Part shown: piece by piece, positions 2,166-36,725 of the stretch
Numbering within the stretch: position 1 is the stretch's first letter
Layout of the letters: the number at the start of each line of letters is the position of its first letter
Virus record (IMG/VR): IMGVR_UViG_3300025536_000010
Span: 170,887-234,886 of that record
Strand: one strand, 5' to 3'
DNA length: 64,000 nt
Made by a program: the position numbers and the translations under genes
Notes under the pieces: model-generated
The model's database searches: none
The model's input: only the letters and a program-made list of their open reading frames with translations
What the model was told of the DNA's origin: nothing

Positions 2166-2623
2166 TGACCATTACCGAGTTGGTGATTGCGGCACTGGCG
2201 ACCTGGGAGATAATCGAGATCTGGCGGCACGGTAGTATCTTCGCCGACCGGCGGGCCTACGCCCAGGCCGAAGGCTACGGACACTTCCTACGGCGGCTGC
2301 TCGATTGCGGCTTCTGCCTGAGCCCGTGGGTCGCCTTCCTGCTCGTGCTGTGCCCGCTGACGCTGTCCCTGGCGGTCGACCCACCACGGCACTGGTTGGC
2401 TGGCTCGGTGTGGGCGTTCTTCCTGTTGTGGCGTTACGCCGTCTACGCCTTTGCCGTTGCTCGGCTCGCCAACCTCGGTAATGATCTCACGCACTCGTGG
2501 TGCCGCACACCAGACACCAAGAAGCAGATCGCCGCGCAGTTCGCGGGCGATGATTCAAAAGCCACTTTAGAGGAGAGGCCGCATGGACCAGCAACCGATG
2601 CAAACGGAGAAGACCACGTTTGA
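2162..2623 (+). CDS. Membrane protein with CxxC motif (DUF1360-like)
   Basis: LLDCGFCLSPWVA motif between hydrophobic helices. Confidence 0.6.
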   Translation: MMTITELVIAALATWEIIEIWRHGSIFADRRAYAQAEGYGHFLRRLLDCGFCLSPWVAFLLVLCPLTLSLAVDPPRHWLAGSVWAFFLLWRYAVYAFAVARLANLGNDLTHSWCRTPDTKKQIAAQFAGDDSKATLEERPHGPATDANGEDHV

Positions 2624-2999
2624 CATGGCCGTTATGGCCAAGCTCAAAAACGCCGCCGACAGCGTGTTGACCGAGCACCCAGAGGTTGACTGCGTCTGTG
2701 CGGTCGTCTCCTGGAAGGGCAACCTCAACGACGCTGGCATCAAACACGGCATCTGGGTCGGTGACCAAGGGCCAGTCGGTACGGCCGAGGGCATTTTCGG
2801 CAGCATGTACCAACTAATAAAGATGTTCGACGAGCAGGCCACGAGGGCCGTGAAATACGTCGAGCATGTCCGCGAAAAAGTTGAGGTTCTGGGAACAGAA
2901 CTGAGGAACCGCCATGAAGAACTCGAAGCGGTCAAAGCAGAAATCGCAAAGTGCAAAGCCCAAGTTCAGTCTGACGCCGGAGGAACAAAAACCACTTGA
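2583..2999 (+). CDS. Hypothetical protein with C-terminal coiled coil
   Basis: GAGGAG RBS, typical codon usage. Confidence 0.65.
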   Translation: MDQQPMQTEKTTFDMAVMAKLKNAADSVLTEHPEVDCVCAVVSWKGNLNDAGIKHGIWVGDQGPVGTAEGIFGSMYQLIKMFDEQATRAVKYVEHVREKVEVLGTELRNRHEELEAVKAEIAKCKAQVQSDAGGTKTT

Positions 3000-3564
3000 G
3001 GACTTACTCAAGGACCACGGCGTCAAGAACTGGGACTTCCTCATCGTCGGTGACGGCTCCGGGTCGAACTGGAACCGTGAGGCGGGCTGGGGCGCAGTCA
3101 GTATCGAAAAAATCACAATGGAACGTCTCGTGTGGACCGGGACGATGAACAAGGGCACGGTCAACTTCGCAGAGATGATGGCTTACCAGCAGCCACTCAG
3201 CTGGCTGGCCGCCCGCGAAGAAGATCGCCGCGCCAAGCGCGCGGTGAAGTACCGGGCCTACCAGGTCCACATCTTCACGGACAGTGACTACTGCCGGCAA
3301 ACCGGCAACAGCAAGAACCGCCTCGTGGCCAAGAACGGGGCGTTGTGGGCGGCGTTCGATAGTTACGTTCGGCAGGGCTTCGTGCTCAACTGGCACTGGA
3401 TACCGCGCGGCAGCGTGGCCCTGAACTCCTACTGTGACAGGCTGTCGAAACTGGCAAGGCTCCTGATGAAAAAGTATAATCTCCAGGAGAAGCTAGAAAC
3501 GGAACACTCCTGCGGGGGTGTACCGCGGACAGTCTACGACATCAACCCGTCCGAGGCGGGGTAG
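2914..3564 (+). CDS. rnhA: Ribonuclease HI-like protein
   Basis: IVGDGSG..AGWGAV, TVNFAEM, IFTDSDY, KNGALW, WHWIP, N..CDRLSK match the RNase HI D-E-D-D pattern. True start may be slightly downstream. Confidence 0.8.
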   Translation: MKNSKRSKQKSQSAKPKFSLTPEEQKPLEDLLKDHGVKNWDFLIVGDGSGSNWNREAGWGAVSIEKITMERLVWTGTMNKGTVNFAEMMAYQQPLSWLAAREEDRRAKRAVKYRAYQVHIFTDSDYCRQTGNSKNRLVAKNGALWAAFDSYVRQGFVLNWHWIPRGSVALNSYCDRLSKLARLLMKKYNLQEKLETEHSCGGVPRTVYDINPSEAG

Positions 3565-9093: not shown

Positions 9094-9288
9094 GAGGGCG
9101 AAGCCTGAGCGCGTGCGAGGCGCGCTCCCGGCGTCGGGGGCGGGAGCGCGCTGAACCTAAAAGCCATATACGAGGAGCCTGCGGCTCTGTCGCCGATGTG
9201 TTGAGGGAAGCCCGCCGTGGTTAAGCGCGACGCTCCCTTGACCCCTTAATAACTTCTTGGGCTCGCGCAGCGCAGCCCAGGAGAGATT

Positions 9289-9355
9289 TATAATAAGTAG
9301 GCTAGCTACTTAGCCTAAGATGTGCCCCAGGTATTAGGCTAACTGTTAGCCTAAT
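9289..9355 (+). promoter_or_regulatory. AT-rich region with TATAAT and two TAGGCTA-N5/6-TAGCCTA palindromes (operator or origin candidate)
   Basis: TATAAT 9289-9294; palindromes 9298-9317 and 9333-9355 (ATTAGGCTAAC-T-GTTAGCCTAAT). Confidence 0.6.
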
Positions 9356-16591: not shown

Positions 16592-16783
16592 ATGTTACCT
16601 GAACCATCCAAGCCTGGAGTCCAGCTGTGCATGAAGTGCGGCTGGAAGTTCATCAGTCCTGACCCGGAGCGTATCCGTCGCTGTCAGGACTGCAAGAAAC
16701 ACGAAGAACTGTACGAACCGCCCTCGGGGAGGCTAGTCCTCACCGAGGGCATCGTACACATCCTCTGGGAGTTCCAGCAGTGA
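16592..16783 (+). CDS. Small zinc-ribbon protein
   Basis: GGAGG RBS; CMKCG..F......RRCQDC. Confidence 0.65.
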   Translation: MLPEPSKPGVQLCMKCGWKFISPDPERIRRCQDCKKHEELYEPPSGRLVLTEGIVHILWEFQQ

Positions 16784-17835
16784 GCGTCGTACGCAAGATC
16801 ATCGTCCTGGGTGACGTTATTCTCGACCGTACGGTTTTCTGCCGTATCAAGGGCCTCTCGCCTGAAAACCAAAATATCTTCGACGTCGAAGAGAAGCACG
16901 GCGACAACGCCCTGGGTGGGGCTGGCAACGTCGCTGCCAACTGCTTCGGGCTGTTCGGGCAGAAAGACGGTCAGTCGGTGCTACCGCTGTTCCTGGTCGC
17001 GGCCGACGATGCTGGCAGGGAGATTACCTGCCTGTTGAACTGTCTGCATGTGGAGTACGGCCTGGACCGTTACTACGGCGGCGTGACAGCGGAGAAGATT
17101 CGCTACGTCACCAGCAGTGGTCAGCTGCTGCGCATCAGCCGCGAGGGGTCTGGCGATCTGTCGAGCGGCTACTGGTCCAGCAGCAAGTCCAGTCTGAGCC
17201 TGCGGTTGAACGTGGAGATCCAGGAGCCTGTCCGGCCGGTCGTTTGCCTCGTCGACTACGACAAGGGTTATTTCCGCAGCCCATTGGTTACGGAGATCAT
17301 GGTCAAGCTGATCGGCGCGCAGTGCCCGATCATTGTGGACCCCGGTCGGCACGGTCATTGGGAGCGGTATAACCTGGCCACGGTCATCAAGGCCAACGTC
17401 AAGCAGGCCCAGGCGCACTACGAATCGCATCGGGACAGCCGTGCCGACCTGTGCCCGCCGCTCGACTCCCCGGAGAAGTTCGACCCGAACGAATACGAGT
17501 GTGACTCGTTCTACCGCTCCGTGGCCCACCGGCTGCAACGGCTGCTGGACGACACCAAGGTCAACTACGAGCACATGGTTCTGACGCTGGGGGCCGGCGG
17601 TTTGGCGCACTTCACGCCCAACGGGGAAGTGCAGCTGATGCGTGAGCCGCCTTGTGACATTATCGACGTCACTGGGGCCGGCGATACCGTAATGGCCGCG
17701 CTGGCCGTGGGTATGGCGGAGTACGGGCACGACGCGGGGAACATGGCTGCCAACTGCCGGTTCGCGCTCAAAGCAGCCAACGTCGCCGTCCGGCGGCGCG
17801 GGACGACGGTCGTTCACAGAAAAGACGTGGAGTGA
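16780..17835 (+). CDS. HldE/RfaE domain I-like PfkB sugar kinase (heptose-7-phosphate kinase-like)
   Basis: IIVLGDVILDR, LGGAGNVAAN, T.EKIRY....QLLRI, DYDKG, IIVDP, DVTGAGDTVMA. Confidence 0.85.
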   Translation: MSVVRKIIVLGDVILDRTVFCRIKGLSPENQNIFDVEEKHGDNALGGAGNVAANCFGLFGQKDGQSVLPLFLVAADDAGREITCLLNCLHVEYGLDRYYGGVTAEKIRYVTSSGQLLRISREGSGDLSSGYWSSSKSSLSLRLNVEIQEPVRPVVCLVDYDKGYFRSPLVTEIMVKLIGAQCPIIVDPGRHGHWERYNLATVIKANVKQAQAHYESHRDSRADLCPPLDSPEKFDPNEYECDSFYRSVAHRLQRLLDDTKVNYEHMVLTLGAGGLAHFTPNGEVQLMREPPCDIIDVTGAGDTVMAALAVGMAEYGHDAGNMAANCRFALKAANVAVRRRGTTVVHRKDVE

Positions 17836-18371
17836 TGGAACCCGCACGTTTCACGAACAATTACCCAGGCCCTTACTGGGACATGACCTGGCAGCGTTGG
17901 GCCTATCGGGACGCCCTGGACTGGGCCAAGAAAAACAAGCGGACCATCGTGGTCTGCAACGGCTGCTTCGACTTGCTGCACATCGGCCACCTGCGCGTCT
18001 TTCAGGCGGCGCGCGAGGTGGACCCCGGCAACACGTTCGTCGTCGCTGCGGCAAACGACGACGCCACGGTCAAGAAGCTCAAGGGTAAGAGTCGGCCCTT
18101 CCTCACCTTGGAGCAGCGCCTGCACTTCCTCTACGCCATCCGCTTCGTCGACTTCGCAGTCGGCTTCTGGGAGGACACACCGGAGAAACTGCTCCAGTTC
18201 ACGGAGCCAGACTACCTGGCCAAGGGTGAAGAATACAAGGGTCGTGCCGAAGACATCCCTGGCTACCTATACGCCAAGAAAGGTATGCTGTGGGTGCCGA
18301 TGGAGATTGGCTGTCACACCACCGACCTCGCCCTCAAGATCGCTACCGCGACAAGGAAGTCCCTCGGATAA
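17832..18371 (+). CDS. HldE/RfaE domain II-like nucleotidyltransferase (heptose-1-phosphate adenylyltransferase-like)
   Basis: NGCFDLLHIGH, NDDATVKKLKGKSRP, EDTPEKLL...PDYLAKGEEY. Confidence 0.88.
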   Translation: MMEPARFTNNYPGPYWDMTWQRWAYRDALDWAKKNKRTIVVCNGCFDLLHIGHLRVFQAAREVDPGNTFVVAAANDDATVKKLKGKSRPFLTLEQRLHFLYAIRFVDFAVGFWEDTPEKLLQFTEPDYLAKGEEYKGRAEDIPGYLYAKKGMLWVPMEIGCHTTDLALKIATATRKSLG

Positions 18372-20960: not shown

Positions 20961-23108
20961 ATGCACTTCCGCAAGCTACACTTCAAGAACGCCTGCCGGT
21001 TCGAGGACTTTCAGGTGGACCTCAAGAAGGGGTCCGTGGGGGTCTTCGGCAAGAACGGCATCGGTAAGAGCACCCTGCTCAACTTCATGTACGCCATACC
21101 CACAAATGACTTCTCGCGCTTCGAGGGGGTCAAGACGGACTGCATCCGCTACGGCGCACCGGAGAAGGCGGAGAGCTTTCTCTACGGCGAGATCGAGCAC
21201 AACGATCACCTGCTGTGCATCAAGCGGAACTTCAAGCCCACCAAGAACAACCCTGGCACGGTGCTGGTGGTCGACGGCGGTAAGGAGATCACTGACGCCA
21301 ACAAGGCCGAGGAAGAGATCGGCAAGATCCTGGGCGTCGACAAGAAGATGCTCGGGCTCTACGCTTTCAAGACCCAGGACCGCATCTACGACTTCCTGAC
21401 GACCACGCCGACCGAGCGAGCCAAGGCATTTGCCGTCCTGTGCCGCACGGAGGTCTGCGAGGAGATGTGGGACTTCCTGGGCGAGTTCCTCAACAAGGAC
21501 AGCGAGATCAACGCCGTTATCGTCGACAACTCCGACGAACTGCTGGCCGAGATCGCGGCGCTCAAGGGCCAGATCGAGGAACTGGATGCCTCGATCAAGC
21601 AGGAAGAGGAGCGGCTGCTCAACTCCAAAAGCGAGGCATCGGCCCGGGACATCCTCAAGAAGCAGGACCGTAAGGAGGATCTGCTCGGGCAGCAGGAGCG
21701 CTTGCAAGCCAGTCTGGAAGAAAGCCAGGTAACGCTGGCCGAGAAGCAGGAGCGCCTGGCTAAGAGCGAGCGTGTGCGCAAGAAGCGCGCCGAGGACGTC
21801 GAAAGTCTTTGCGTAGCCGCGGACGACGCCAAAGCCGCGCTCAAGGCGTGGGACGCCTACAAGAAGTACCGTGCGCGCCGTAAGGCCCTCAACGTGGAAG
21901 CCGAGGCCCTGGACCGCGAGGAGGAGGAGAATAAGCCGCCGGTGCAGCCGAAGGACTACGGCAAGCACGATCTGGACGCACTGCGCAAACAGGTGGTCGA
22001 TATGGAGTCTGCTTTGGACAGGGCCAAAGCCGTTGTCGCCAAGTTCCAAAGCCAAAAGATCGTGGCTTGCCCGACTTGTAACACGCCGGTCACGGATCTG
22101 GCAGATCACCTGAACGAACAGCGCAAGATCGTCCTGGAGTACCCCAAGGAGGTCGAGCGTCTGGATACCATCGTTGAAACGATGACGGTCTACGACAACA
22201 AGGTTCGCAAGTACGAGAAGTGGTCGGCCGGGTTCGAGGCACGGCGCAAAGCCAACCAGGATGCCCGGGCTGCCCTCAAGGGCATCAATACGCCGGACGG
22301 CGACGAGGCTGATCTCAACAAGGTCATCGAACAGTACCAGGAAGCTGTCCAAGCGCTCACGGAGATTGTTGGCAAGGTCGAGAACACACGCCGCGCCGTG
22401 ACGACTGCGGAGGCTGCGCAGGAGGCTACGCAGAAACGATTGGCCGAGGTGGCCGAAGGCGTCGTGGAGAACACGGTCGACGCGGCCAAGGTGGAGCGGG
22501 CCAGGGAGCGCTTGGAGGAGCATATCGCGTCGGGTAAGAACATCGCACGCATCCAGGGCGAGTGGAAGGGCGTGCAGGCGCAGATCGAAAGCAAGGAGGA
22601 AGACCTGCGCAAGCTGCGCAACCGTCTCAAGCGCAGCAAGAAGGTACGGGCTGTGGCCCGGGTGGCCGAGCGGGTGCGGGACGTCTTGCACCGCGACCGG
22701 CTGCCGCGGCGCGTGGCTGCTACCAACCTGTCACGCATGGAGGGTGACATCAACGAGGGCCTGGGTTACTTCGGCGATCCGTTCTGGGTGGAGTCCGACG
22801 AGAGCCTCCAGTTCACGGCGCACAAACCGGGTGAACCGCCACAACCGGCTCTACGGTTGTCGACCGGGCAGAAGGTCGTGTTGGCGATGGCGTTCTGGCC
22901 TGCGGTGGGCTCGCTCTGGCAGCAGGATCTCGGTATGCTGGCCTTGGATGAGCCGACTGCCAATCTGGACGAGGAGAACCGGAAATTCCTCAGTCAGGCC
23001 CTGGGCGCCATGTCGGCCAAATGCCGCGGGCGGCGGCAACTCATTCTCGTGACGCACGACCCAAACCTGGCGAACTCCTTCGACCAGGTTATCAAACTGG
23101 AGACGTAG
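20961..23108 (+). CDS. sbcC: SbcC/Rad50-like SMC ATPase
   Basis: GKNGIGKST, Q-loop, coiled coil with CPTC zinc hook, LSTGQ signature, LALDEPTANLD, VTH. Confidence 0.92.
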   Translation: MHFRKLHFKNACRFEDFQVDLKKGSVGVFGKNGIGKSTLLNFMYAIPTNDFSRFEGVKTDCIRYGAPEKAESFLYGEIEHNDHLLCIKRNFKPTKNNPGTVLVVDGGKEITDANKAEEEIGKILGVDKKMLGLYAFKTQDRIYDFLTTTPTERAKAFAVLCRTEVCEEMWDFLGEFLNKDSEINAVIVDNSDELLAEIAALKGQIEELDASIKQEEERLLNSKSEASARDILKKQDRKEDLLGQQERLQASLEESQVTLAEKQERLAKSERVRKKRAEDVESLCVAADDAKAALKAWDAYKKYRARRKALNVEAEALDREEEENKPPVQPKDYGKHDLDALRKQVVDMESALDRAKAVVAKFQSQKIVACPTCNTPVTDLADHLNEQRKIVLEYPKEVERLDTIVETMTVYDNKVRKYEKWSAGFEARRKANQDARAALKGINTPDGDEADLNKVIEQYQEAVQALTEIVGKVENTRRAVTTAEAAQEATQKRLAEVAEGVVENTVDAAKVERARERLEEHIASGKNIARIQGEWKGVQAQIESKEEDLRKLRNRLKRSKKVRAVARVAERVRDVLHRDRLPRRVAATNLSRMEGDINEGLGYFGDPFWVESDESLQFTAHKPGEPPQPALRLSTGQKVVLAMAFWPAVGSLWQQDLGMLALDEPTANLDEENRKFLSQALGAMSAKCRGRRQLILVTHDPNLANSFDQVIKLET

Positions 23109-23110
23109 CC

Positions 23111-24088
23111 ATGTCCACCGCCGCGCTCGACTGCGTGAACATCTTGCGTCTGCACACAGACGACGAGGGCGTGGTGTGGTTCGGCGACGATTACCAGTTG
23201 GCTATCAACAGTGAAACCAGAGCGTCAGACTTTTTCGAGTCTGACGCTCTGGGTATCGAACTCAAACACGTCCGTAAGGTGCGGCTGCTAGGCACACGGG
23301 CTAACGCCCCGCTTATCGTCCGCCTGGCGCAGACACGCTGTCGTGACCACAACGTCCAGATTCAACTCGGCTCGCCGGCTTTGGTGCCAACCAGGGCAGC
23401 ACGCGGCGACCCAACTACTGTGTTGCAGTATCTGTGGCAGCCCAGCTACAGCAGCACCTGCCCCGGCATGTGGCACGCTTTCGCTGAACACGACTTCCCT
23501 GGCTACTTGATGCTCAGCGAGTTGCGGGAGAAGCAAGCTGCTTGCCTTGGGGTCGGCAGCTTCCAGGAAGTGCCCGACGTCGTGAAACGCACCGCTCGCT
23601 ACCACCCAGCCTGGCCAGCAGTCACGTTCGTCCCTTGGCTGGATCACAACTGGGCCTGTCGGCTGCTTTGCGAGATTATCGACCCTCGTTGGTTCATCCA
23701 CCCGCAACGACCAGACCGGCCGTCCAGACTGTTCAATCATCTGGGCCTCACGCCGCGGAACATGGGCGCGTTTCTCCAGCAGGGCTTCCCGGACCCGCAC
23801 TACTACCAGGCTACCACAGCACTGCGCTGCTGGTACAATCGAGGCATGCCTCAGAGCCGTAGTGGTCCGGGGAGTTTCCTCTGGCGTGCCTACCTGTCGA
23901 CCGACAACCAGGTCAAAGGTCTGCTGCGCGGTACGCAGCAACTGGTGCGGCTGATCCAGTCGGTGTGGTTGCAAACAGTCGTCCGACCGCACCCTGAATT
24001 CCGGTTTCAACCAATCAAGTTTTTCAAAGATCCAGCCGAAGCGGAGGCGTTCGAGCAGCACCGAGCGTCTTGTAAACCAGTGGAATGA
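23111..24088 (+). CDS. IS110-transposase/Nop-domain-like protein, apparently catalytically inactive
   Basis: HPAWPAVTFVPWL...ACRLLCEIIDPRWF...SRLFNHLGLTP matches the IS110 C-terminal pattern LL.EI.D..RF...L..Y.GL.P; the N-terminal RuvC-like part lacks the DEDD residues. Confidence 0.6.
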   Translation: MSTAALDCVNILRLHTDDEGVVWFGDDYQLAINSETRASDFFESDALGIELKHVRKVRLLGTRANAPLIVRLAQTRCRDHNVQIQLGSPALVPTRAARGDPTTVLQYLWQPSYSSTCPGMWHAFAEHDFPGYLMLSELREKQAACLGVGSFQEVPDVVKRTARYHPAWPAVTFVPWLDHNWACRLLCEIIDPRWFIHPQRPDRPSRLFNHLGLTPRNMGAFLQQGFPDPHYYQATTALRCWYNRGMPQSRSGPGSFLWRAYLSTDNQVKGLLRGTQQLVRLIQSVWLQTVVRPHPEFRFQPIKFFKDPAEAEAFEQHRASCKPVE

Positions 24089-24100
24089 GCGGTTGCCCTG

Positions 24101-24109
24101 TGGTAAAAT
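24101..24109 (+). promoter_or_regulatory. Extended -10 promoter element upstream of the RAMP-like gene
   Basis: TGGTAAAAT (TGnTAnAAT) ending 38 nt before ATG 24148. Confidence 0.5.
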
Positions 24110-24147
24110 ATACCCACGTCAACCGTCGCACAGAGGGAAGGGAAGCC

Positions 24148-24672
24148 ATGCGGGAACTAACCGTACGGATACGGTTTCGGGAACACTGTATTGGTAACGC
24201 CAAGGAGGCCAACGGGGGCTACCGGCTACTGCTGCCGCGGAACCCGTTTGGGCGTATCGTTTTTCCGGCCAGTTGGCACCGATCCAATCTCAGGTTCGCC
24301 GCGCAACTGCTTGGGCGACACCAGGACGAGGCCCAGAAGATCCTCTGGGACGTAGAGGTTGACGGCTACGTCCGCAAAGGCGGCTGGTTCAAACGGCAGT
24401 ACCAAACCAACGACGGTAGGCCGCGCCATGCCCTGCACGAGGCGTTTTTGCCGGGGCAGGTGGTCGGTATCAACTGCGTGGTGCCGGCGACCATCCCCGA
24501 CGACGATTTCATCAGCCTGATGAACATCGCGGGGCGTTACAAGGGTTTGAGCCCGCACGGCCCTGGTCAGTTTGGCTTTTTCGAGGTCGAGAGCGTCCGA
24601 CCGCGCCGGGCGGCGCAGCCGGGCGAAGGAGAGCAGCATGACGAAGGGGTGAAACAATGGAAGCACGTCTAG
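24148..24672 (+). CDS. Stand-alone RAMP-superfamily (Cas7/Csm3-like) protein, 174 aa
   Basis: LTVRIRFREHCIG (first strand plus Gly), GRIVFPASWHRSNLRFAA (P.S..R..LR helix), HEAFLPG, LMNIAGRYKGLSPHGPGQFGFFEV (Gly-rich loop plus last strand). Confidence 0.65.
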   Translation: MRELTVRIRFREHCIGNAKEANGGYRLLLPRNPFGRIVFPASWHRSNLRFAAQLLGRHQDEAQKILWDVEVDGYVRKGGWFKRQYQTNDGRPRHALHEAFLPGQVVGINCVVPATIPDDDFISLMNIAGRYKGLSPHGPGQFGFFEVESVRPRRAAQPGEGEQHDEGVKQWKHV

Positions 24673-24795
24673 CTGCCAACTAGACGTGCCTCCATAGCGG
24701 TGACGGCTTGTTCCGGTGTGCTGGTGGAACCATAAGCCTGTTCTAACTATACCCCGCCGCCACCCCAGTTTCAACTCTATTCCAGTTTTTGGAGT
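24663..24795 (+). ncRNA. Candidate structured RNA between the RAMP and helicase genes
   Basis: Perfect 10-bp stem GCACGTCTAG/CTAGACGTGC (24663-24689); second bulged stem ATAG..ACGGCTT-GTTCC/GGAAC..AAGCC.GT..CTAT (about 24694-24750). Confidence 0.35.
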
Positions 24796-24804
24796 GGCGA
24801 AGCT

Positions 24805-26373
24805 ATGCGCAAGAAGATCACCGTCCTGCGGACGGATGACAAGATCGTCGTCGAACCGACCACGCGCCGCGTACGAGCGCTGATCGAGCAAGACCTCACC
24901 TACATCGAAAAGAGCTTCTTTCACGGCTACGAGCGCAAGAAGCGGCTCAAACACGGCCTGCCGCCTTTCGAGGAAATCGAGTGGCAGTGTTACGGTGAGG
25001 ATCACAAGGGCAGGCTCTCCACGTCCTGGGGCTTCTGCGAGCGCATCGTGGACCTGCTGGAGAAGGACGGCTACCCGGTCGAGGTGCGCTGGGCTACCAA
25101 GGGCAACCAGGAGGAGGCTGCGCAGCGCGCCGAGACGGTCTACAAGCCTCGCTGGGACCGCATCGAGCAGCTGGAAGCGGATGGCTTCAAGTTCCGCTAC
25201 AAACAGCGGAAGGCCCTCAATCTAATAGCCACTTTTGAGAACGGCCGCATCTCGTGCCCCCCTGCCTGGGGCAAGGGCACCCTTATCATGCTGGCCAGTG
25301 TCCTCTTCCCCAAGGCCAAGATTGCCGTGGTCACCGACCGCGTCGACGTTCTCCAGACCCGGCTCTATCCCGAACTGGCCATGAATCTACCCTCGGTAGG
25401 TATCGTGGGTGGGGGCATGCGCCGCAAGGGTCGGCGAGTCATGTGCTACACCGCAGACAGCCTGCACCACTGCCCGAACGACGTGGACTTTGTGTTCGTG
25501 GACGAGGGCCACGAGGCGTGTGCCGACAAGTTCGCGGAGTCGATGGGCAAGTTCAGTAAAGCCAGGATCTGGATGTTCTCGGCAACCTGGGATATGCGCC
25601 TGGACAACAAGGACATCCGTGCCGAGGCGATGGCTGGCAAGATCCGCCTGCACGTCCCGTACCAGAAGGCCGTCGAACACGGCATGGTCGTCCCAGTCGA
25701 GGTCATCTGGGACGACGTCATCATGGACGAAAACCCGTGCTCGGGTCTGGACGGCGTGGACAAGGATCGGGCTGGCATCTGGGCCAACGACTATCGCAAC
25801 AAGCTGATCGCCAAGAACAGCGGCCTGTACGGCCCGGAGGTCCAGGAACTTATCACCTGCAAGACGCTCGAACACGCTCTGCACCTCAAAAAGATTTTGC
25901 CGGGTCACGTCCTGGTCTACTCAGGACAGCAACTCAAGGACCGGGACATCCGCTGGTTTCGTGACTGCGGCCTCATCGACGACACCTGGCGGCCGATGAC
26001 GATGGAGAAGCGTAAGCGGCTGACCAAACGCTTCGAGCGCGGTAAGCTCAAGAAGGCCATCGCCACCACGGTTTGGAACGTGGGTGTGAACTTCAAGCAG
26101 CTGGCCGTCGTCAACCGGGCGGACGCGGGCGGTTCGCCGATCAACGACACACAGATCCCTGGACGCGGCGCGCGTATCGACGACGTCTCGGGTAAGAAGA
26201 AGCTCTGTGCCATCATCCACGATTACAAGGACCAGTTCGACACAGGCACGCGGATGAAAGCCGAGCGCCGAGGAAAGTCTTATGACGCCAACGAGTGGCG
26301 TCAGCATCACCCAAAGAAGGAGAAGCGGTCGCTGTTGCGGCAGCTGATGGAATGGGGGAACCCACTCAAATGA
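24805..26373 (+). CDS. Superfamily 2 (DExH) helicase
   Basis: CPPAWGKGT, VDEGH, SAT, IATTVWNVGVN, QIPGRGAR. Confidence 0.9.
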   Translation: MRKKITVLRTDDKIVVEPTTRRVRALIEQDLTYIEKSFFHGYERKKRLKHGLPPFEEIEWQCYGEDHKGRLSTSWGFCERIVDLLEKDGYPVEVRWATKGNQEEAAQRAETVYKPRWDRIEQLEADGFKFRYKQRKALNLIATFENGRISCPPAWGKGTLIMLASVLFPKAKIAVVTDRVDVLQTRLYPELAMNLPSVGIVGGGMRRKGRRVMCYTADSLHHCPNDVDFVFVDEGHEACADKFAESMGKFSKARIWMFSATWDMRLDNKDIRAEAMAGKIRLHVPYQKAVEHGMVVPVEVIWDDVIMDENPCSGLDGVDKDRAGIWANDYRNKLIAKNSGLYGPEVQELITCKTLEHALHLKKILPGHVLVYSGQQLKDRDIRWFRDCGLIDDTWRPMTMEKRKRLTKRFERGKLKKAIATTVWNVGVNFKQLAVVNRADAGGSPINDTQIPGRGARIDDVSGKKKLCAIIHDYKDQFDTGTRMKAERRGKSYDANEWRQHHPKKEKRSLLRQLMEWGNPLK

Positions 26374-29951: not shown

Positions 29952-29988
29952 CGGTTACTAACTGCGTGTGCTAAGGATCGGAGTAAGT

Positions 29989-32900
29989 ATGGACGGAGAG
30001 AAAAAGAAAGCCAAACTGCGCCGGCGCATCCGCATGCTGGAAAGAGAGGAGCGCAAAAAGCATAAGCGGCTGCTCAACGCGGTAGTCGGCAAGTCTGGCA
30101 TGTGGCCTTTGAACGCCCCGGGGATGCCTCCCCCGGGGCCTGATTTTCTCAGGGTCGCTCAGGGCCTGGGCGATCAGACGGAATACGCCAAGCAAACCAA
30201 GACGAGGGAGGGCGTCTATAAGCCTGGCGACAAACTGGAGGAACTGTACCGGCGGGCGCTGCGCGAGGTCGGCTTCTCCATCGACGTCAAAATCCGCGAG
30301 GGCACCTATGGTCCGGTGACGTTCGTGCCTGGACACATCTGGGGCCAGTATTCGGAAGAGTGGCAGCGGTCGATCCTGGAGCCTAACTACGAGCCCCCCA
30401 AGATCGACGGCCCCCACCCGGCCGAAGTGTTTGTCCTGGGTAAGATGCCCTGGCGCGAAGAGACAATCGAGGGCCGTAACCTGATCGGGGCTACCGGCGA
30501 AATCCTCATCGACCTGATCGCTAAGCTGCGCGTCCGCGGTGCGCAGAAATGGTACGTCAGCAATCTTGTGAAGTTCATGCCGCCCGACGACACCAGCGTC
30601 CTCAAAGCGGGCTGGATACACGATTGCATGCCGCTCCTGCATCAGGAACTGCGGATCGTGCGGCCCAAGTACATTCTCTGCCTGGGCGCGGACGCCTCGA
30701 AGTGGCTGCTCGGCGACAAGTTCAACGTCAGCTACATGGCGGGGCGCGTCGTCCCCTATACCTACCCTATCCATTTGACGTACGACCACGAGCCTGAACA
30801 CCACACGGCGCACGTCATGACGGTGTTGCACCCTGCGGAAGTCTCCCGCGAGCCCGCCAAGGCCCGCATCCTGGAGAGCAACTTCCGGCGCTTCGCGTAC
30901 CTGATCGAGGGCCACAACCTCGACATTGAGGAACAGGGACTGGACCACAGGGTCTGCAACACGCTCGAAGACGCCGAGGAGTGGGTGCAGGAGGTCAACG
31001 CCTACTTCGCCGACAAGCCGAAGCGCTTACGGCTCGTGGGGATCGACGCCGAATGGCAGGGGCAGCACCCGATCAACAAGGGTAGCTACGTCCGCACGAT
31101 CCAGATCGCGTGGGACGAGAAAAAGTCGATGTGCTTCGTGATCTCGCACCCGGGCGGCAAATGCGCGTTTCGGGACCGAGACGGCAAACCGGCGGTCAAG
31201 CGCCTGGTCAGGCTGCTCAACGAGTTCATGGAGGACAAGCGTGCTTGCGGCCACTTCTTTGTCTCTGACTTGGAGTGGCTGCATCATCTGGGGTTCGATC
31301 CAATCAAGCACTGTCCGGTGCCGCTCTACCCGAACAAGAAAGGCAAGCTGGCCTGGGAGCGGCTGCGGAACGGTGAAGGTTGGCTCGACAGCGCCTACAT
31401 GAACCACGCTGTCGAGGAGACGGCACCGCTGGGGTTGGAAATGCTGACGATGCGCTACACTAGCGCACCGCGGTACGACATTGCACTCGAAGATGCCGTG
31501 AAGGAGTATTGCAAGAAACAAGGCATCAAGCGCGAGGCTCTGGAGGGCTACGGCGATATACCGGACAAGGTGCTGGTGCCGTACGCCAACTACGATGCCG
31601 ACGTGACGCTGCGCATCGTCAAGAACTTGCTGGAACTTCTCGACTCGGACTACGAAGGCAACTGCGCCTGGGAGCCGTTCTGGGAGTCGATGATTATCCA
31701 AAAACCGATTTTGAGAATCCACAAGAACGGCATCTGTGTCGACCGTGGCCGCGTGGACGATCTCACCAAAAAGTTCGTCACGGCGCGTTACGCCCAGGAA
31801 GAGAAGATCCAGACCTGGGCGCGCTGGACGGAGACGGAAGAGTGCGCGGCGTTCAACGTCCGCTCGAACCAGCAGGTTCGTGAGTTCCTGTTCGGCGAGA
31901 AGTACAACGGCAAGCGGGACGAGCGCGGCAAGCCGATCCGCCTGCGCCCCGAGGGTGCGCGCTGTTTGAATCTGGAACCGTTGCTGGACACCAGCAAACC
32001 GCCTCGGCGGTGGAAAGACCTCAAGGAGCGTGGTCTGGACCGCGATGCCACGCCTGGCACTGGCAAGATGATCCTGGGCATCATGGCGCAGGAGAATCTG
32101 AACGTGGCGGACCAGATCAACATGGTCCGCGACTATCGGTTCCTGGATCAGGTTTTGAAGTCGATCCTGCGGCACCCCAAAGTGGACGAGGACGACCACT
32201 GGATCGAGAACGAGGACGGCTTTTTGGAGTACGAAGCAGGCTTGGCCGCTTGCATCGACAACGACGGTCGGGTGCGTACGCACATCTACCCGACAGCGGA
32301 AACGGGTCGGTGGAAACACTCCCGGCCGAACCTAGCTAACATCAGCAAGAGCCGCGACCCCGACTACGTCCGCATGCTGGGCGGCGAGAAGGTGAACGGC
32401 AAATGGGTCGGCGGGCTGTACACGCACAAGCTGCGCAGCGTCCTCAAAGCTGCCCCCGGGTACTGTCTTATCGAGTTCGACTACAAGGGCGCCGAACTAT
32501 ACGGTATGTCCTTGATGGCTGGCTCGAAGAAGATGATGGAGCACTGCGAGCGCGCTAACACCTACGAGGAGGAGGGCTACAGCCGGAAGGGCAAGAAAGC
32601 CAAACCGGATCACAAATGCAAGGACGGCAAAAAGGGCTGCGAGTTGTGCGGCTACCCGTCGCCGGAATACTACGACATCCACTCGAACGTCGCCAAGCTG
32701 GCGTTCCAGCTGGAGTGTCACCCGAGCAAGTTCGGCCTGGATCAGATCGGCAAATCGCACTTCCGCACGCTGGCGAAGAATGTGATCTTCGGCATCGCCT
32801 ACGGTCGTGGGGCCAAAGCCATCGCGCTCCAGGCCAAGGAGCAGGGCGTCAACGTCACCGTCGAGCAGGCCCAGATGGTCATCGACGCCATTTTCGAGAT

Positions 32901-33381
32901 GTACCCGGAGTTGGTCCCGTTCTTCGACGAGGCCAAGCAGCGAGCGCTCAACGAGAAGTGGTTATGCCACTGCTTCGGTCGCTACCGGCGCTTTCCCACG
33001 ACTTCGGACTACAAGATGGAGGGTGAGTTCGAGCGGCAGGCGATGAACTTCCCGATCCAGGGCATGATCGCGTCCGCTGTGGATCGCGGCCTGGCTTTCC
33101 TGGACGACAAGATTGACGAGCTTGGCCTCCAGGACGATATTCGTCTGTTGTTGCAGATGCACGACGCCGGCCTGGTGGAGTGCAAGTACGAATTGGTCCC
33201 GTACGCCAAGAAGCTCATCAACTGGGCGATGGTCGACATGGTCGAGATCTGGCCTACGGATCTGGCCGGAGAAATGCGCGGCGACGGTCCCTACCACCTG
33301 GGCCTGGACTTCGCCGTCGAGCAGCACTGGGGCGAGAAGATCCCCAAGGACAAGTACGCTGAACTAGGAATCCCGGTATGA
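29989..33381 (+). CDS. polA: Family A DNA polymerase with N-terminal uracil-DNA-glycosylase-like domain and 3'-5' exonuclease
   Basis: UDG-like block (LGKMP..G..G, SNLVKF.P, HPA); IDAE, YANYDAD exonuclease motifs; TGRW..SRPNLANI; DYKGAEL; RTLAKNVIFGIAYG; QMHD. Confidence 0.93.
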   Translation: MDGEKKKAKLRRRIRMLEREERKKHKRLLNAVVGKSGMWPLNAPGMPPPGPDFLRVAQGLGDQTEYAKQTKTREGVYKPGDKLEELYRRALREVGFSIDVKIREGTYGPVTFVPGHIWGQYSEEWQRSILEPNYEPPKIDGPHPAEVFVLGKMPWREETIEGRNLIGATGEILIDLIAKLRVRGAQKWYVSNLVKFMPPDDTSVLKAGWIHDCMPLLHQELRIVRPKYILCLGADASKWLLGDKFNVSYMAGRVVPYTYPIHLTYDHEPEHHTAHVMTVLHPAEVSREPAKARILESNFRRFAYLIEGHNLDIEEQGLDHRVCNTLEDAEEWVQEVNAYFADKPKRLRLVGIDAEWQGQHPINKGSYVRTIQIAWDEKKSMCFVISHPGGKCAFRDRDGKPAVKRLVRLLNEFMEDKRACGHFFVSDLEWLHHLGFDPIKHCPVPLYPNKKGKLAWERLRNGEGWLDSAYMNHAVEETAPLGLEMLTMRYTSAPRYDIALEDAVKEYCKKQGIKREALEGYGDIPDKVLVPYANYDADVTLRIVKNLLELLDSDYEGNCAWEPFWESMIIQKPILRIHKNGICVDRGRVDDLTKKFVTARYAQEEKIQTWARWTETEECAAFNVRSNQQVREFLFGEKYNGKRDERGKPIRLRPEGARCLNLEPLLDTSKPPRRWKDLKERGLDRDATPGTGKMILGIMAQENLNVADQINMVRDYRFLDQVLKSILRHPKVDEDDHWIENEDGFLEYEAGLAACIDNDGRVRTHIYPTAETGRWKHSRPNLANISKSRDPDYVRMLGGEKVNGKWVGGLYTHKLRSVLKAAPGYCLIEFDYKGAELYGMSLMAGSKKMMEHCERANTYEEEGYSRKGKKAKPDHKCKDGKKGCELCGYPSPEYYDIHSNVAKLAFQLECHPSKFGLDQIGKSHFRTLAKNVIFGIAYGRGAKAIALQAKEQGVNVTVEQAQMVIDAIFEMYPELVPFFDEAKQRALNEKWLCHCFGRYRRFPTTSDYKMEGEFERQAMNFPIQGMIASAVDRGLAFLDDKIDELGLQDDIRLLLQMHDAGLVECKYELVPYAKKLINWAMVDMVEIWPTDLAGEMRGDGPYHLGLDFAVEQHWGEKIPKDKYAELGIPV

Positions 33382-34553: not shown

Positions 34554-36725
34554 ATGGCAACGAAACGTTTGGCAGCACGCAAGCCCGCCGATTACGACAG
34601 CCGCGTCCACGGGCGCCGCGAGACGAACATTCCCCAGGACGACCACACCATCAACGAGGGCATCTGCCCCGTCAACCTGCTGCGCCCGCGGTACGATGAC
34701 GGCCCCATGTACTTCATCCCGTTCAAGCACCCCAGCTACGAAGACCCGGAGAACATGCTCCAGCCGGGCCGTACTGCCCCGGAACCGGGTGCTTACTCGC
34801 ACTGGCTGATCCGTATGGAGGTCGCGGCTTACATCGGCTTGCCGGACTGCACGAAGCACAGCTTCAACCTGCGCCACCCGGCCGACAAGGAGGCCAAGAA
34901 GGGCAACCCCTACCGCGAGTTGTACTTCGCCGCTGCCCAGGCGCACGATAACGGTCAGTTCGGGAACGGCAAGAAATGGGACAGCAGCTGGAACAAGTTC
35001 CTCAAGGGGAGCAAGAAGTCCGGCGGTGCAGCGCTGTCCCGTCCCACTGCCAAGTATTTCGTCCAGGGCGCCGTGTTCTGCAACGGCGACCGCGACTACA
35101 TGGAAGGCGACCGCGAGTTGCCGTTCGGTTTGGCCCAGGGTGACGACCTGACGGTCATTCAGATCCCGGTGTCCGCCGGCCAGGGTATCATCAAGCTGCT
35201 GGACATCGAGAAGGACCAGTACGAAGGCAACGGCGAAGACGATCCTTCGGCCCCGTTCAAGTGGGGTGATCCGACTGGTCGGTTCAAGAAGAAGGCGCGC
35301 ACCATCTCCGGCTGCAAGGTCTTCTGCATCTACAACCCGAAGAAGACCAAGATCAAGCAGGACACCTCGTTCAGCGGGGAGTTCAAGGAGATCCAGGGCT
35401 ACGAGGCCGCCATCAAGGAAGCCTACAAGGCCGGCGGGCAGGTGCTGTTCGACGGCAACTTGGAAACCAAGCAGGTCGATTTCATCTTCGAGCACGCGCA
35501 GTTCTGGTTCGACGACGAAGACAGCGGCACCAAGGGGCTGTTGCGCATCGCACCCGTGGAACAGCAGGCGCTGTGGGTCGCCCAGGCGTTCAAGTCGGCT
35601 CCGAAGCTGATTGCCTTCGCCTGGTCCGAGCAAGAGGGCCTCATGACCGACGAGGTCAAGGCCGTCTTGGCGGCGCGTGTCAGCGCTGTCGTCCCCGGCG
35701 AGGACGACGACGATGACGACGATGAGGACGATGAGACGCCGAAGCGCAAGGTGAAGAAAGACCCGAGCGCCAAGGCCGGCAAGAAGGCCAAGCCCGAGGC
35801 CGACGACGAAGATGATGATGAAGACGACGAGGAGGAAACCTCGAAGAAGGGCAAGAAGCCTGCCAAGGGCAAGAAGGCCAAGGACGAGGAAGACGAGGAA
35901 GACGAGTTCGAGGACGACGAAGACTCGGACGACGACTCGGACGACGACGAAGAGGAGGACGAGAAGCCGGCCAAGAAGGGTAAGAGCAAGAAGGCCAAGG
36001 ACGACGACGAGGACGACGACTCCGACGACGAAGAGGAGGACGACGACTCCGACGACGAAGACGACTCCGACGAGGACGACGACTCCGACGACGAAGAGGA
36101 GGACGACGACTCCGACGACGAAGAGGAGGACGACGACTCCGACGACGAAGACGACTCCGACGAAGAGGAGGACGAGAAGCCGGCCAAGAAGGGTAAGAGC
36201 AAGAAGCCCGCGGCCGAGGACGACGAAGAGGAGGAGGACGACGACTCCGACGACGAAGACGACGAAGAGGAGGAGGACGACGACTCCGAGGACGACGACT
36301 CCGACGACGAAGACGACGAAGAGGAGGAGGACGACGACGAAGACGACGAGAAGCCGGCCAAGAAGGGTAAGAAGCCTGCGGCCAAGGACGACGACGAAGA
36401 GGAGGACGACGAAGACGACGAAGAGGAGGACGAGGACGACGACAAGCCGACCAAGAAGGGCAGCAAGGACAAGAAGCCCGCTGCCAAGGTCGGGAAGAAG
36501 CCCGAAGCCAAGGCCGAGAAGCCGGCTGCCAAGAAGGGCAAGGGCAAGAAGGGCGACGAGGAGGACTACTTCGGCGATAGCGACGCCGGCAAGGCCGCTA
36601 GCAAGTCCGCGAAGGCCGCCAAGGCCGCCAAGGACAACTCGGCCAAGCGCGGGTCGGCACCGAAGAAGGAAGCTCCCAAGCCTCCGGCGAGCAAGGGCGG
36701 TAGCGCCAAGCGCAAGCAGAAGTAG
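34554..36725 (+). CDS. Probable ssDNA-binding/recombination mediator protein with a roughly 340-aa D/E/K low-complexity tail
   Basis: Position between polA and recA, strong codon bias, own terminator, acidic tail; the fold is not recognised directly. Confidence 0.55.
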   Translation: MATKRLAARKPADYDSRVHGRRETNIPQDDHTINEGICPVNLLRPRYDDGPMYFIPFKHPSYEDPENMLQPGRTAPEPGAYSHWLIRMEVAAYIGLPDCTKHSFNLRHPADKEAKKGNPYRELYFAAAQAHDNGQFGNGKKWDSSWNKFLKGSKKSGGAALSRPTAKYFVQGAVFCNGDRDYMEGDRELPFGLAQGDDLTVIQIPVSAGQGIIKLLDIEKDQYEGNGEDDPSAPFKWGDPTGRFKKKARTISGCKVFCIYNPKKTKIKQDTSFSGEFKEIQGYEAAIKEAYKAGGQVLFDGNLETKQVDFIFEHAQFWFDDEDSGTKGLLRIAPVEQQALWVAQAFKSAPKLIAFAWSEQEGLMTDEVKAVLAARVSAVVPGEDDDDDDDEDDETPKRKVKKDPSAKAGKKAKPEADDEDDDEDDEEETSKKGKKPAKGKKAKDEEDEEDEFEDDEDSDDDSDDDEEEDEKPAKKGKSKKAKDDDEDDDSDDEEEDDDSDDEDDSDEDDDSDDEEEDDDSDDEEEDDDSDDEDDSDEEEDEKPAKKGKSKKPAAEDDEEEEDDDSDDEDDEEEEDDDSEDDDSDDEDDEEEEDDDEDDEKPAKKGKKPAAKDDDEEEDDEDDEEEDEDDDKPTKKGSKDKKPAAKVGKKPEAKAEKPAAKKGKGKKGDEEDYFGDSDAGKAASKSAKAAKAAKDNSAKRGSAPKKEAPKPPASKGGSAKRKQK
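35700..36560 (+). repeat. Coding low-complexity tandem repeats (GAC/GAA/GAG runs; DDDSDDEEE and EKPAKKGK units)
   Basis: Repeated gacgacgactccgacgacgaagaggag and gagaagccggccaagaagggtaag. Confidence 0.9.

Follow-up and report, generated by a model that had tools for sequence, protein, structure and literature searches.

Gene content and conservation of the locus

The window, by which the whole analyzed stretch of DNA is meant, comprises the last 64 kb of a viral IMG/VR contig of 234,886 bp. The gene under study is an open reading frame on the plus strand of the window that runs from ATG 24148 to TAG 24670-24672 and encodes a protein of 174 amino acids, referred to below as the RAMP protein on the basis of its predicted fold (features and coordinates are collected in Table 1). 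The local gene order begins with an Mre11-like phosphoesterase, three small ORFs without a Pfam match and an SbcC/Rad50-like ATPase; it continues with a 325-aa protein, the RAMP protein, an SF2 helicase, a 254-aa protein, a DnaB-like helicase and a primase, and it ends with a PolA fused to a UDG domain. The RAMP gene is the last gene of a unit formed by the Rad50-like, TasR-like and RAMP genes, and lies directly before the gene for the XPB/UvsW-like helicase. The window contains neither cas genes nor arrays, and replication genes surround the RAMP gene, which bears out the original prediction of a RAMP that stands without cas partners.

Table 1. Features of the RAMP locus, with their positions in the window and the evidence for each.
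Feature	Position	Strand	Evidence
SbcC/Rad50-like ATPase, heads the gene string	20961..23108	+	Pfam AAA_15, SMC_N, AAA_23; PHROG 77 at 1.4e-45
Upstream 325-aa gene, predicted TasR/IS110/Nop5 architecture	23111..24088	+	AF2, VIA-align, ESM Atlas
Extended -10-like match TGGTAAAAT, putative	24101..24109	+	sequence; inside the 59-nt gap behind the upstream gene
Purine-rich ribosome-binding stretch GAGGGAAGGGAAG	24133..24145	+	read from the sequence
CDS of the 174-aa Vipr-like/Cas7-like RAMP protein	24148..24672, stop included	+	ORF, homologue alignment, AF2 model, RAMP matches
Beta-hairpin, residues 80-100 (strands 80-86 and 92-100)	24385..24447	+	model secondary structure, conservation
Gly-rich loop, residues 132-144, between helix 2 and the last strand	24541..24579	+	profile similarity to Vipr
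Variable C-terminal tail, residues 155-174, likely disordered	24610..24669	+	pLDDT <50 at 163-174; not alignable among homologues
Perfect 10-bp hairpin, loop CTGCCAA, 5' arm includes the RAMP stop codon	24663..24689	+	sequence, fold, relatives
SF2 helicase of the XPB/UvsW kind, downstream	24805..26373	+	Pfam Helicase_C, PHROG 16, PDB profile, synteny

Homologue searches show that the gene is real and conserved. In the public gene call it starts at ATG 24085, giving a protein of 195 aa whose reading frame overlaps the stop codon of the upstream gene; however, residues M1, R2 and E3 (start MRELTV) are invariant across 42 aligned homologues, and ATG 24148 is therefore taken as the true start. The gene had also been credited with a promoter of its own, an assignment that was not confirmed: a consensus promoter scan finds no sigma-70-type site on the plus strand upstream of the gene, and no -35 element accompanies the -10-like match. 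While the preceding gap measures 59 nt in the window, the RAMP gene in 11 of 19 relatives begins no more than 11 nt past the preceding stop, an arrangement that fits co-transcription, and in most relatives the gap is too short to hold a promoter; a private promoter is thus not a feature of the family.

The hairpin at the stop codon marks the end of the Rad50-like/TasR-like/RAMP transcription unit. The region 24650-24804 folds better than its shuffles (z -3.7), and of 33 relatives more than 20 have a strong hairpin at the corresponding position; the stem sequences differ, and an A-run often precedes the hairpin. In one subclade GTGTAGCGG comes next after the hairpin; it looks regulatory, since in these loci it is found again ahead of the DnaB-like gene. 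The hairpin and GTGTAGCGG are read as a terminator and regulatory elements, respectively, and not as a guide. The 132-nt intergenic region 24673-24804 was considered as a dedicated guide RNA and rejected, as it is not periodic, the GTGTAGCGG element recurs, and the hairpin is explained as a terminator.

Around the RAMP gene, all 26 IMG/VR loci retrieved with the family profile share one gene order, and so do other contigs. This order is kept even in the very divergent members P0380 and P0368, two of the three that were looked up, the third (P0388) having no helicase directly downstream of the RAMP gene. When relatives were sought from the side of the helicase, a single-protein query matched only the window's own contig; a helicase alignment query found the 68 loci of the helicase-anchored survey, about 40 of which carry the RAMP gene immediately upstream of the helicase. 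Five loci have the RAMP gene without the 325-aa gene, whereas in one subclade (L039-L041 and L043) the RAMP gene is missing and the 325-aa gene abuts the helicase; the presence of the RAMP gene is independent of that of the 325-aa gene. Most of the distant relatives likewise have no RAMP gene, and where it is present it lies next to the helicase. Since it is missing from lineages that keep the helicase, the RAMP gene is widespread but dispensable to the module, and its absence from L039-L041, L043 and most of the distant relatives is also an observation that speaks against a replication role. The RAMP protein equals the helicase in conservation, with 44–65% identity versus 35–62%, and is more conserved than the 325-aa protein. 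The RAMP gene belongs stably to a replication/recombination module found in a broad group of large (~150-235 kb) phages, so that the description of it as an orphan has to be given up. As a general matter, what lies next to a gene in a phage says little about its function, which likewise speaks against reading a replication role from the module.

A word-indexed search returned 187 homologues with 50–66% identity, all of them unnamed, viral or metagenomic and without a Pfam domain, on contigs of up to ~236 kb. After clustering at 50% identity, an exhaustive profile search yields 219 representatives, of which 154 reach E<=1e-10; almost all have lengths of 150–200 aa. Residues 1-155 of the RAMP protein form the conserved core, while the tail varies and is modelled as disordered; across relatives the proteins have diverged to 25–65% identity. 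None of the family members listed comes from nr or UniRef, six NCBI-sourced members carry neither accession nor name, and tblastn finds no relative of the RAMP protein in GenBank phages; the ESM Atlas clusters of the family are 96–100% viral. Because of its absence from nr/UniRef the family could not have been part of the published VIPR survey. The match to RAMP/Cas7 sequence profiles that might have been expected did not materialize: the window protein has none in Pfam, NCBIfam, PHROGs or PADLOC, the last of these having no match for two neighbours either, and Pfam RAMPs matches none of 53 diverse family members at E<=1. The RAMP protein belongs to a separate family that has not been described before.

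The two genes that flank the RAMP gene are of different kinds. The profile of the downstream helicase matches archaeal XPBII (1e-13) and T4 UvsW (3.6e-11) in the PDB. For the upstream 325-aa protein a sequence profile has no match in the PDB, and sequence pointers and Foldseek matches are weak; its AlphaFold2 (AF2) model (pLDDT 90.2, pTM 0.90) has a predicted RNase H/RuvC-like N-terminal domain and a helical C-terminal domain. VIA-align matches this model to TIGR-TasR (9mty_B, Z 10.8 over 240 residues), to TasH (Z 8.3, C-terminal half), to the IS110 recombinase ISCro4 (6.5) and to RuvC/YqgF resolvases (~6), and the ESM Atlas gives a TM of 0.66 to a Transposase_20 cluster. The relationship among TasR, IS110 and Nop5 has been described (PMC12045711). 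There are no conserved acidic residues in the N-terminal RuvC-like domain, and the 325-aa protein is therefore probably not an active RuvC nuclease.

Predicted fold and nearest relatives of the RAMP protein

The AF2 model of the RAMP protein, built on a 42-sequence alignment, is a single RRM predicted with high confidence (pLDDT 90.5, pTM 0.81) and has the topology beta1-alpha1-beta2-[hairpin]-beta3-alpha2-Gloop-beta4. In the model, strand 2-10 is followed by helix 41-55, strand 66-72, the hairpin (80-86 / 92-100), strand 105-112, helix 118-131, the loop 132-144 and strand 145-152. The hairpin is predicted to be inserted between RRM strands 2 and 3, which is the position of the thumb in RAMPs, and contains the near-invariant residues R83, H97 and E98. 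The G-loop has the family signature G-x-S-P ... G; among 53 diverse family members G133 and G143 are invariant and G129 is near-invariant. All of the RAMP motifs originally read from the sequence are present and fall on matching predicted elements: the first strand and then G16; P40.S42..R45..L48R49, at the start of the first helix; and E98....G103, followed by the second helix, the Gly-rich loop and the last strand. The model shows two features of the RAMP superfamily, an RRM (ferredoxin-like) core and a Gly-rich loop before the last strand, and the RRM/RAMP fold on which the original prediction depended is thus predicted.

Comparison of the model with 48,161 PDB representatives using VIA-align places CRISPR RAMPs exclusively in rows 1-44. 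The best matches are to Cmr4-like 6s6b_I (Z 11.3) and Csm3 9g9a_G (Z 11.1), with ~150 of 155 residues aligned, followed by gRAMP (Z 10.8), type IV Csf2 (8.5–8.9), type I Cas7 (6–8) and Cas6 (~6). In Foldseek, 108 PDB chains match at E<=1e-3, with Csm3, Cmr4 and type VII Cas7 at the head; the best BFVD matches are viral RAMP proteins, and the structural matches in the ESM Atlas agree with the RAMP assignment. A minimal RAMP/Cas7-like protein outside any CRISPR locus, with an RRM, a hairpin at the thumb position and a G-loop, is accordingly what the high-confidence model depicts, as had been proposed.

The Cas6 match bears on one alternative, namely a Cas6-like protein that binds or processes RNA, recognizing the hairpin directly behind its gene as well as similar hairpins and thereby influencing where transcripts of the replication module end. 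Such a role would account for the strong hairpin at or after the stop codon in the window and in the relatives that share it, Cas6 proteins are themselves RAMPs, and the H97-E98 pair is near-invariant. However, the Cas7-type matches are much stronger (Z 11 versus 6), the model contains a single RRM where Cas6 has two, no catalytic residues can be assigned, and the hairpin, often behind an A-run, is equally explained as a terminator; this alternative is considered improbable.

Stand-alone phage RAMPs, named Vipr, were first described in 2026 and have been proposed to be ancestors of CRISPR RAMPs (VIPR preprints). Vipr, a minimal RAMP of phages, forms polymers along vrRNAs that contain 9-16 YNNGG repeats, and it silences double-stranded DNA (bioRxiv 10.64898/2026.04.26.720920,.720927). 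The tandem pentanucleotides of a vrRNA may also follow NNNGG, YNNNG or NNNNG, and they lie in flanking intergenic regions. Seven types of VIPR (Viral Interference Programmable Repeat) have been published, and five AFDB entries (X1U2U4, A0A2D6XG06, A0A1F4YLN4, A0A0F9A1L0 and A0A661D0E2) were named as the founding non-CRISPR RAMPs (VIPR preprints 2026). In the Vipr of Escherichia phage SUSP1, which serves as the reference (PDB 36pp; KT454805.2 28474-29061), the residues that read GGY are H17, R138, D177, W178 and R179 (VIPR preprints 2026). The closest characterised relatives of the protein studied here, the Vipr proteins, are guide-dependent DNA silencers and not replication factors, an observation that goes against a replication role.

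The relation to Vipr is seen both in structure and in sequence. A search of AFDB (2.3 million clusters) ranks the founding Vipr entries 1, 2, 3, 6 and 12. Searched against the PDB, the family profile has SUSP1 Vipr (36pp_D) as its top match, at E 1.1 and, with a broader profile, at 0.018. Alignment of the family by hhalign to a Vipr type II profile (40 members, built from SUSP1 vipr, L007:2039-2626) gives a probability of 87.6% for the close family and of 94.3% (E 1e-7) for the broad profile, over 42 columns, the similarity being confined to helix 2, the G-loop and the last strand (~40 residues). In reciprocal HMM searches of six-frame ORFs from all loci the only matches outside the query family are to the other family (E ~1e-3). 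Because of the hhalign and reciprocal matches to Vipr, and because Pfam RAMPs does not match, the RAMP protein appears from its sequence to be a remote relative of Vipr that is nearer to Vipr than to CRISPR Cas7. Judged from the model, its nearest known relatives would be the phage Vipr proteins and then the type III Cas7 proteins (Csm3/Cmr4).

The relationship does not appear to extend to the readout of the guide. The counterpart of Vipr D177 is P136, a proline that all 42 close homologues share and that is near-invariant in the 53 diverse members; the position of R179 is not conserved in the family; that of W178 is W in most close homologues and H137 in the window protein; and H17 corresponds to N17 by manual register. 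By alignment, the GGY-reading residues of Vipr are not kept in the RAMP family.

A further alternative, the Cascade-poisoning mimic of the original prediction, can be weighed at this point. An anti-CRISPR decoy of this kind would imitate Cas7, either joining type I/III/IV complexes of the host or sequestering crRNA, and a Cas7-like fold in a phage that has no cas partners is what such a decoy would look like. Yet the gene resides in a conserved replication module and not in a variable accessory region, it is kept across relatives as diverged as those described above, the protein is closest to Vipr and not to any host Cas7 subtype, and there is no PADLOC match or anti-defence annotation. The context lends the idea no support, and it is regarded as highly improbable.

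Searches for a guide array

Arrays were sought in the 64-kb window of the 235-kb genome and, in relatives, within 3-10 kb on each side of the gene. By exact scan, the window contains no YNNGG run of at least 4 units, and a single NNNGG x4 lies within a CDS; a tolerant scan for GG periodicity of the 64-kb window remains at shuffle level. A base-agnostic column scan for arrays with at least two conserved columns at periods 4-7 is likewise at shuffle level in the window and in 19 of 20 related 20-kb loci, the remaining one being the canonical VIPR of locus L017 described below. As controls, the SUSP1 arrays score 20/20 and 29–35 of 30–36, and the L017 array scores 20/20. A period-5 scan of 72 further loci (519 kb) finds no array. 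In the window itself Rfam, a tRNA scan and TRF reveal no RNA family and no period-5 array, and the only interspaced repeat at periods of 18-120 is an acidic coding repeat at 35.9-36.4 kb; the 64-kb window thus holds no CRISPR-like or TIGR-like array. Repeats of 57 nt in locus L009 were examined as a candidate array and rejected as coding repeats ('MORN-like' by eye). A distant guide might lie outside the scanned 64 kb and the 3-10 kb flanks, and a non-periodic guide or a weak array with one conserved column (NNNNG) might escape such scans; this consideration too counts against a replication role.

Locus L017 is instructive. A genuine Vipr gene lies there at L017:1508-2200 (its match to the Vipr profile has E 1.6e-49) and is followed at 2240-3205 by ~12 vrRNAs with a common tail, a motif that is absent from the window. 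This canonical VIPR lies 8 kb upstream of the same phage's copy of the RAMP-family gene; as a single phage carries both, the two proteins are suggested not to be interchangeable. The gene in the window does not conform to the minimal vipr-vap operon layout, as it ends the Rad50-like/TasR-like/RAMP string with gaps of 59 and 132 nt on its two sides. The RAMP protein is not a canonical VIPR. The proposal of an ancestral or derived RAMP that uses a non-CRISPR RNA stands in part: such a protein matches the published description of Vipr, but no RNA partner was found.

It is against these results that the principal alternative must be weighed, in which the protein is the effector of a true VIPR-like system for RNA-guided DNA binding, with guides that are distant, non-periodic or written in a different repeat code, and which would silence competing elements or regulate the phage's own genes. 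In its favour, Vipr proteins are both the nearest structural relatives and the only ones to which sequence similarity can be detected, and the G-loop position of Vipr W178, after the S-P pair, holds an aromatic residue in most close homologues. VIPR types with a single vrRNA, as well as phage-borne orphan vrRNAs, have already been described (VIPR preprints 2026), and 171 kb of the genome lie outside the scanned window. On the other side stand the array scans, which detect the SUSP1 and L017 arrays and find none beyond the canonical VIPR of L017; the GGY-reading residues, which are not conserved; the lack of a vipr-vap two-gene layout and of long flanking intergenic regions; the separate and complete VIPR of L017, with its own Vipr; and a synteny fixed in a housekeeping module, unlike that of an accessory conflict system. 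On balance an effector of this kind seems rather unlikely, though it is the alternative to which most weight is given.

Proposed role and comparison with known systems

The reading that we tentatively prefer, with the chances somewhat against it even so, is that the stand-alone Vipr-like RAMP binds RNA or single-stranded nucleic acid and serves the replication/recombination module. Since no nucleic-acid partner was found, this function is deduced from the fold and the neighbourhood. Its ligand would be single-stranded nucleic acid, RNA being the likeliest, contacted through the surfaces customary in RAMPs (helix 1, G-loop and thumb hairpin); the protein may act as an oligomer and would lack the GGY-specific readout of Vipr. 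It might then serve the replication/recombination machinery, for example by holding an R-loop or primer RNA for the neighbouring helicase, and it would not be an array-guided silencer of competitors.

A more specific form of this proposal, unlikely and held with less conviction than the VIPR-like effector, is that the protein is an array-less relative of Vipr with a housekeeping role, one that coats R-loop or primer RNA at phage origins or at recombination intermediates. In that capacity it would work with the XPB/UvsW-like helicase and with the presumably nuclease-dead TasR/IS110/Nop5-like protein. If this were true, RAMPs (perhaps together with Nop-type RNA binders) would have had a part in viral DNA replication that preceded or accompanied their use in VIPR and CRISPR interference.

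Among solved structures the RAMP protein of the replication module is most like type III Csm3/Cmr4 (6s6b_I, 9g9a_G, 6ae2_B) and the Cas7 domains of gRAMP/Cas7-11, with Z 9.8–11.3 over 134-153 aligned residues and a Foldseek E of 2e-6. Unlike type III Cas7 it is found without Cas10, Csm or Cmr partners or a CRISPR array, and it is smaller, free of elaborations and, in the 53 family members compared, without a match to Pfam RAMPs. Nor is it a class 1 Cas7 as these are recognized, by cas genes with a CRISPR array and by curated Cas7 models, none of which is found in the 64-kb window. Type IV systems with Csf2 and DinG (7jhy_e, 8rc3_A, 8rc2_A) likewise have a RAMP on a mobile element beside an SF2 helicase gene and act without target cleavage; however, the helicase of the present locus is XPB/UvsW-like and not DinG, it belongs to the DnaB-like/primase/PolA string, and Csf1, Csf3, Cas6 and an array are all lacking.

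The neighbouring 325-aa protein has counterparts of its own. It shares a predicted layout of a RuvC-like plus a Nop-like domain with TasR of the TIGR-Tas systems and with IS110 bridge-RNA recombinases, but differs from them in having no significant sequence match and no conserved acidic residues, and in the absence of a TIGR-like array from the window.

With Vipr the protein has in common that it is a phage-encoded RAMP of ~150-230 aa, with a single predicted RRM, a hairpin predicted at the thumb position and a G-loop. It differs from Vipr in that its gene has neither a YNNGG/vrRNA array close by nor a vap partner, lacks long intergenic flanks and lies within a replication module. Stand-alone phage RAMPs were already known; what is new in this family is its distinct G-loop signature, the lack of an array nearby and its replication-module context. 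The family is large and yet invisible to surveys based on nr and UniProt, it has lost the GGY readout and an adjacent guide array, if it ever possessed them, and it is fixed beside a helicase in the replication module of large phages, near a protein that is built like the RNA-guided TasR and IS110 enzymes. The choice is between a new kind of guide and a role for RAMPs outside interference guidance, and both outcomes bear on the origin of RNA-guided systems.

RAMP gene boundaries and flanking elements

In public gene calls the RAMP gene, which encodes the window's minimal Cas7-like protein, begins at ATG 24085 (195 aa) and shares an ATGA overlap with the upstream stop codon. Judged by its homologues, the true start is 24148, and positions 24085-24147 lie outside the gene. 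At the other end a conserved hairpin is found at the stop codon; in relatives it often has an A-run on its 5' side, an arrangement that, seen from the opposite strand, would look like an intrinsic terminator. In one subclade of related phages (loci L016-L028) each locus has two copies of the 9-mer GTGTAGCGG (around 10540 and 12850), one downstream of the RAMP gene and the other immediately upstream of the DnaB-like gene.

Coordinates of features in the window and in the related locus L017
Feature	Position	Strand	Content
Intergenic repeats	9230-9353		TAGGCTA / TAGCCTA
PfkB-family kinase gene and adjoining cytidylyltransferase-like gene	16780-18371	+	
325-aa gene	23111-24088	+	RuvC-like and helical Nop-like domains
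Stop-codon hairpin of RAMP gene with the intergenic region after it	24663-24804		
Family A DNA polymerase fusion	29968-33381	+	N-terminal uracil-DNA glycosylase superfamily domain, 3'-5' exonuclease domain
723-aa protein	34554-36725	+	repeats 35880-36490
Complete canonical VIPR locus	L017:1508-3205 (IMGVR_UViG_3300016667_000797)		Vipr gene and vrRNAs

Related phages with a VIPR locus or without the RAMP gene

The L017 Vipr (230 aa; G-loop AGRLCGLGDFRPRFGGF) matches the type II profile, built around SUSP1 Vipr, with E 1.6e-49, and its gene is followed downstream by ~12 vrRNAs with YNNGG repeats, most of which end at the 3' side in GGGCCGCAAGGCTAG or a one-base variant (seven exact copies). The same phage also carries a RAMP-family copy, the VIPR locus lying 8 kb upstream of it. 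The RAMP gene is absent from the helicase-anchored loci L039-L041 and L043, where the 325-aa gene abuts the helicase gene directly; these phages (107-186 kb) form one subclade of the relatives and are natural 'knockouts' that could be set against RAMP-carrying relatives.

Other genes and repeats of the window

The AT-richer intergenic repeat region precedes a gene at 9354 and holds several copies of its heptamers in both orientations, which look like a putative set of operators or binding sites. The glycosylase-polymerase fusion is also present in relatives. Just upstream of a Mre11-like gene lies the kinase/cytidylyltransferase-like pair; bacterial HldE/RfaE-type sugar-nucleotide enzymes have the same two domains, whereas the window phage has separate genes. 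The 723-aa protein, for which no Pfam match was found, combines a long Asp/Glu-rich repeat region with Lys-rich stretches, and its repeat DNA consists of GAC/GAA/GAG triplet arrays with a perfect 63-nt duplication.

The gene upstream of the RAMP gene

The 325-aa protein belongs to a family of 86 proteins, all unnamed. Conserved acidic catalytic residues are lacking, and the surroundings of its gene hold no TIGR-like array. Its two-domain build (Z 10.8 to TasR) gives it an architecture like that of TIGR-TasR, IS110 recombinases and Nop5.
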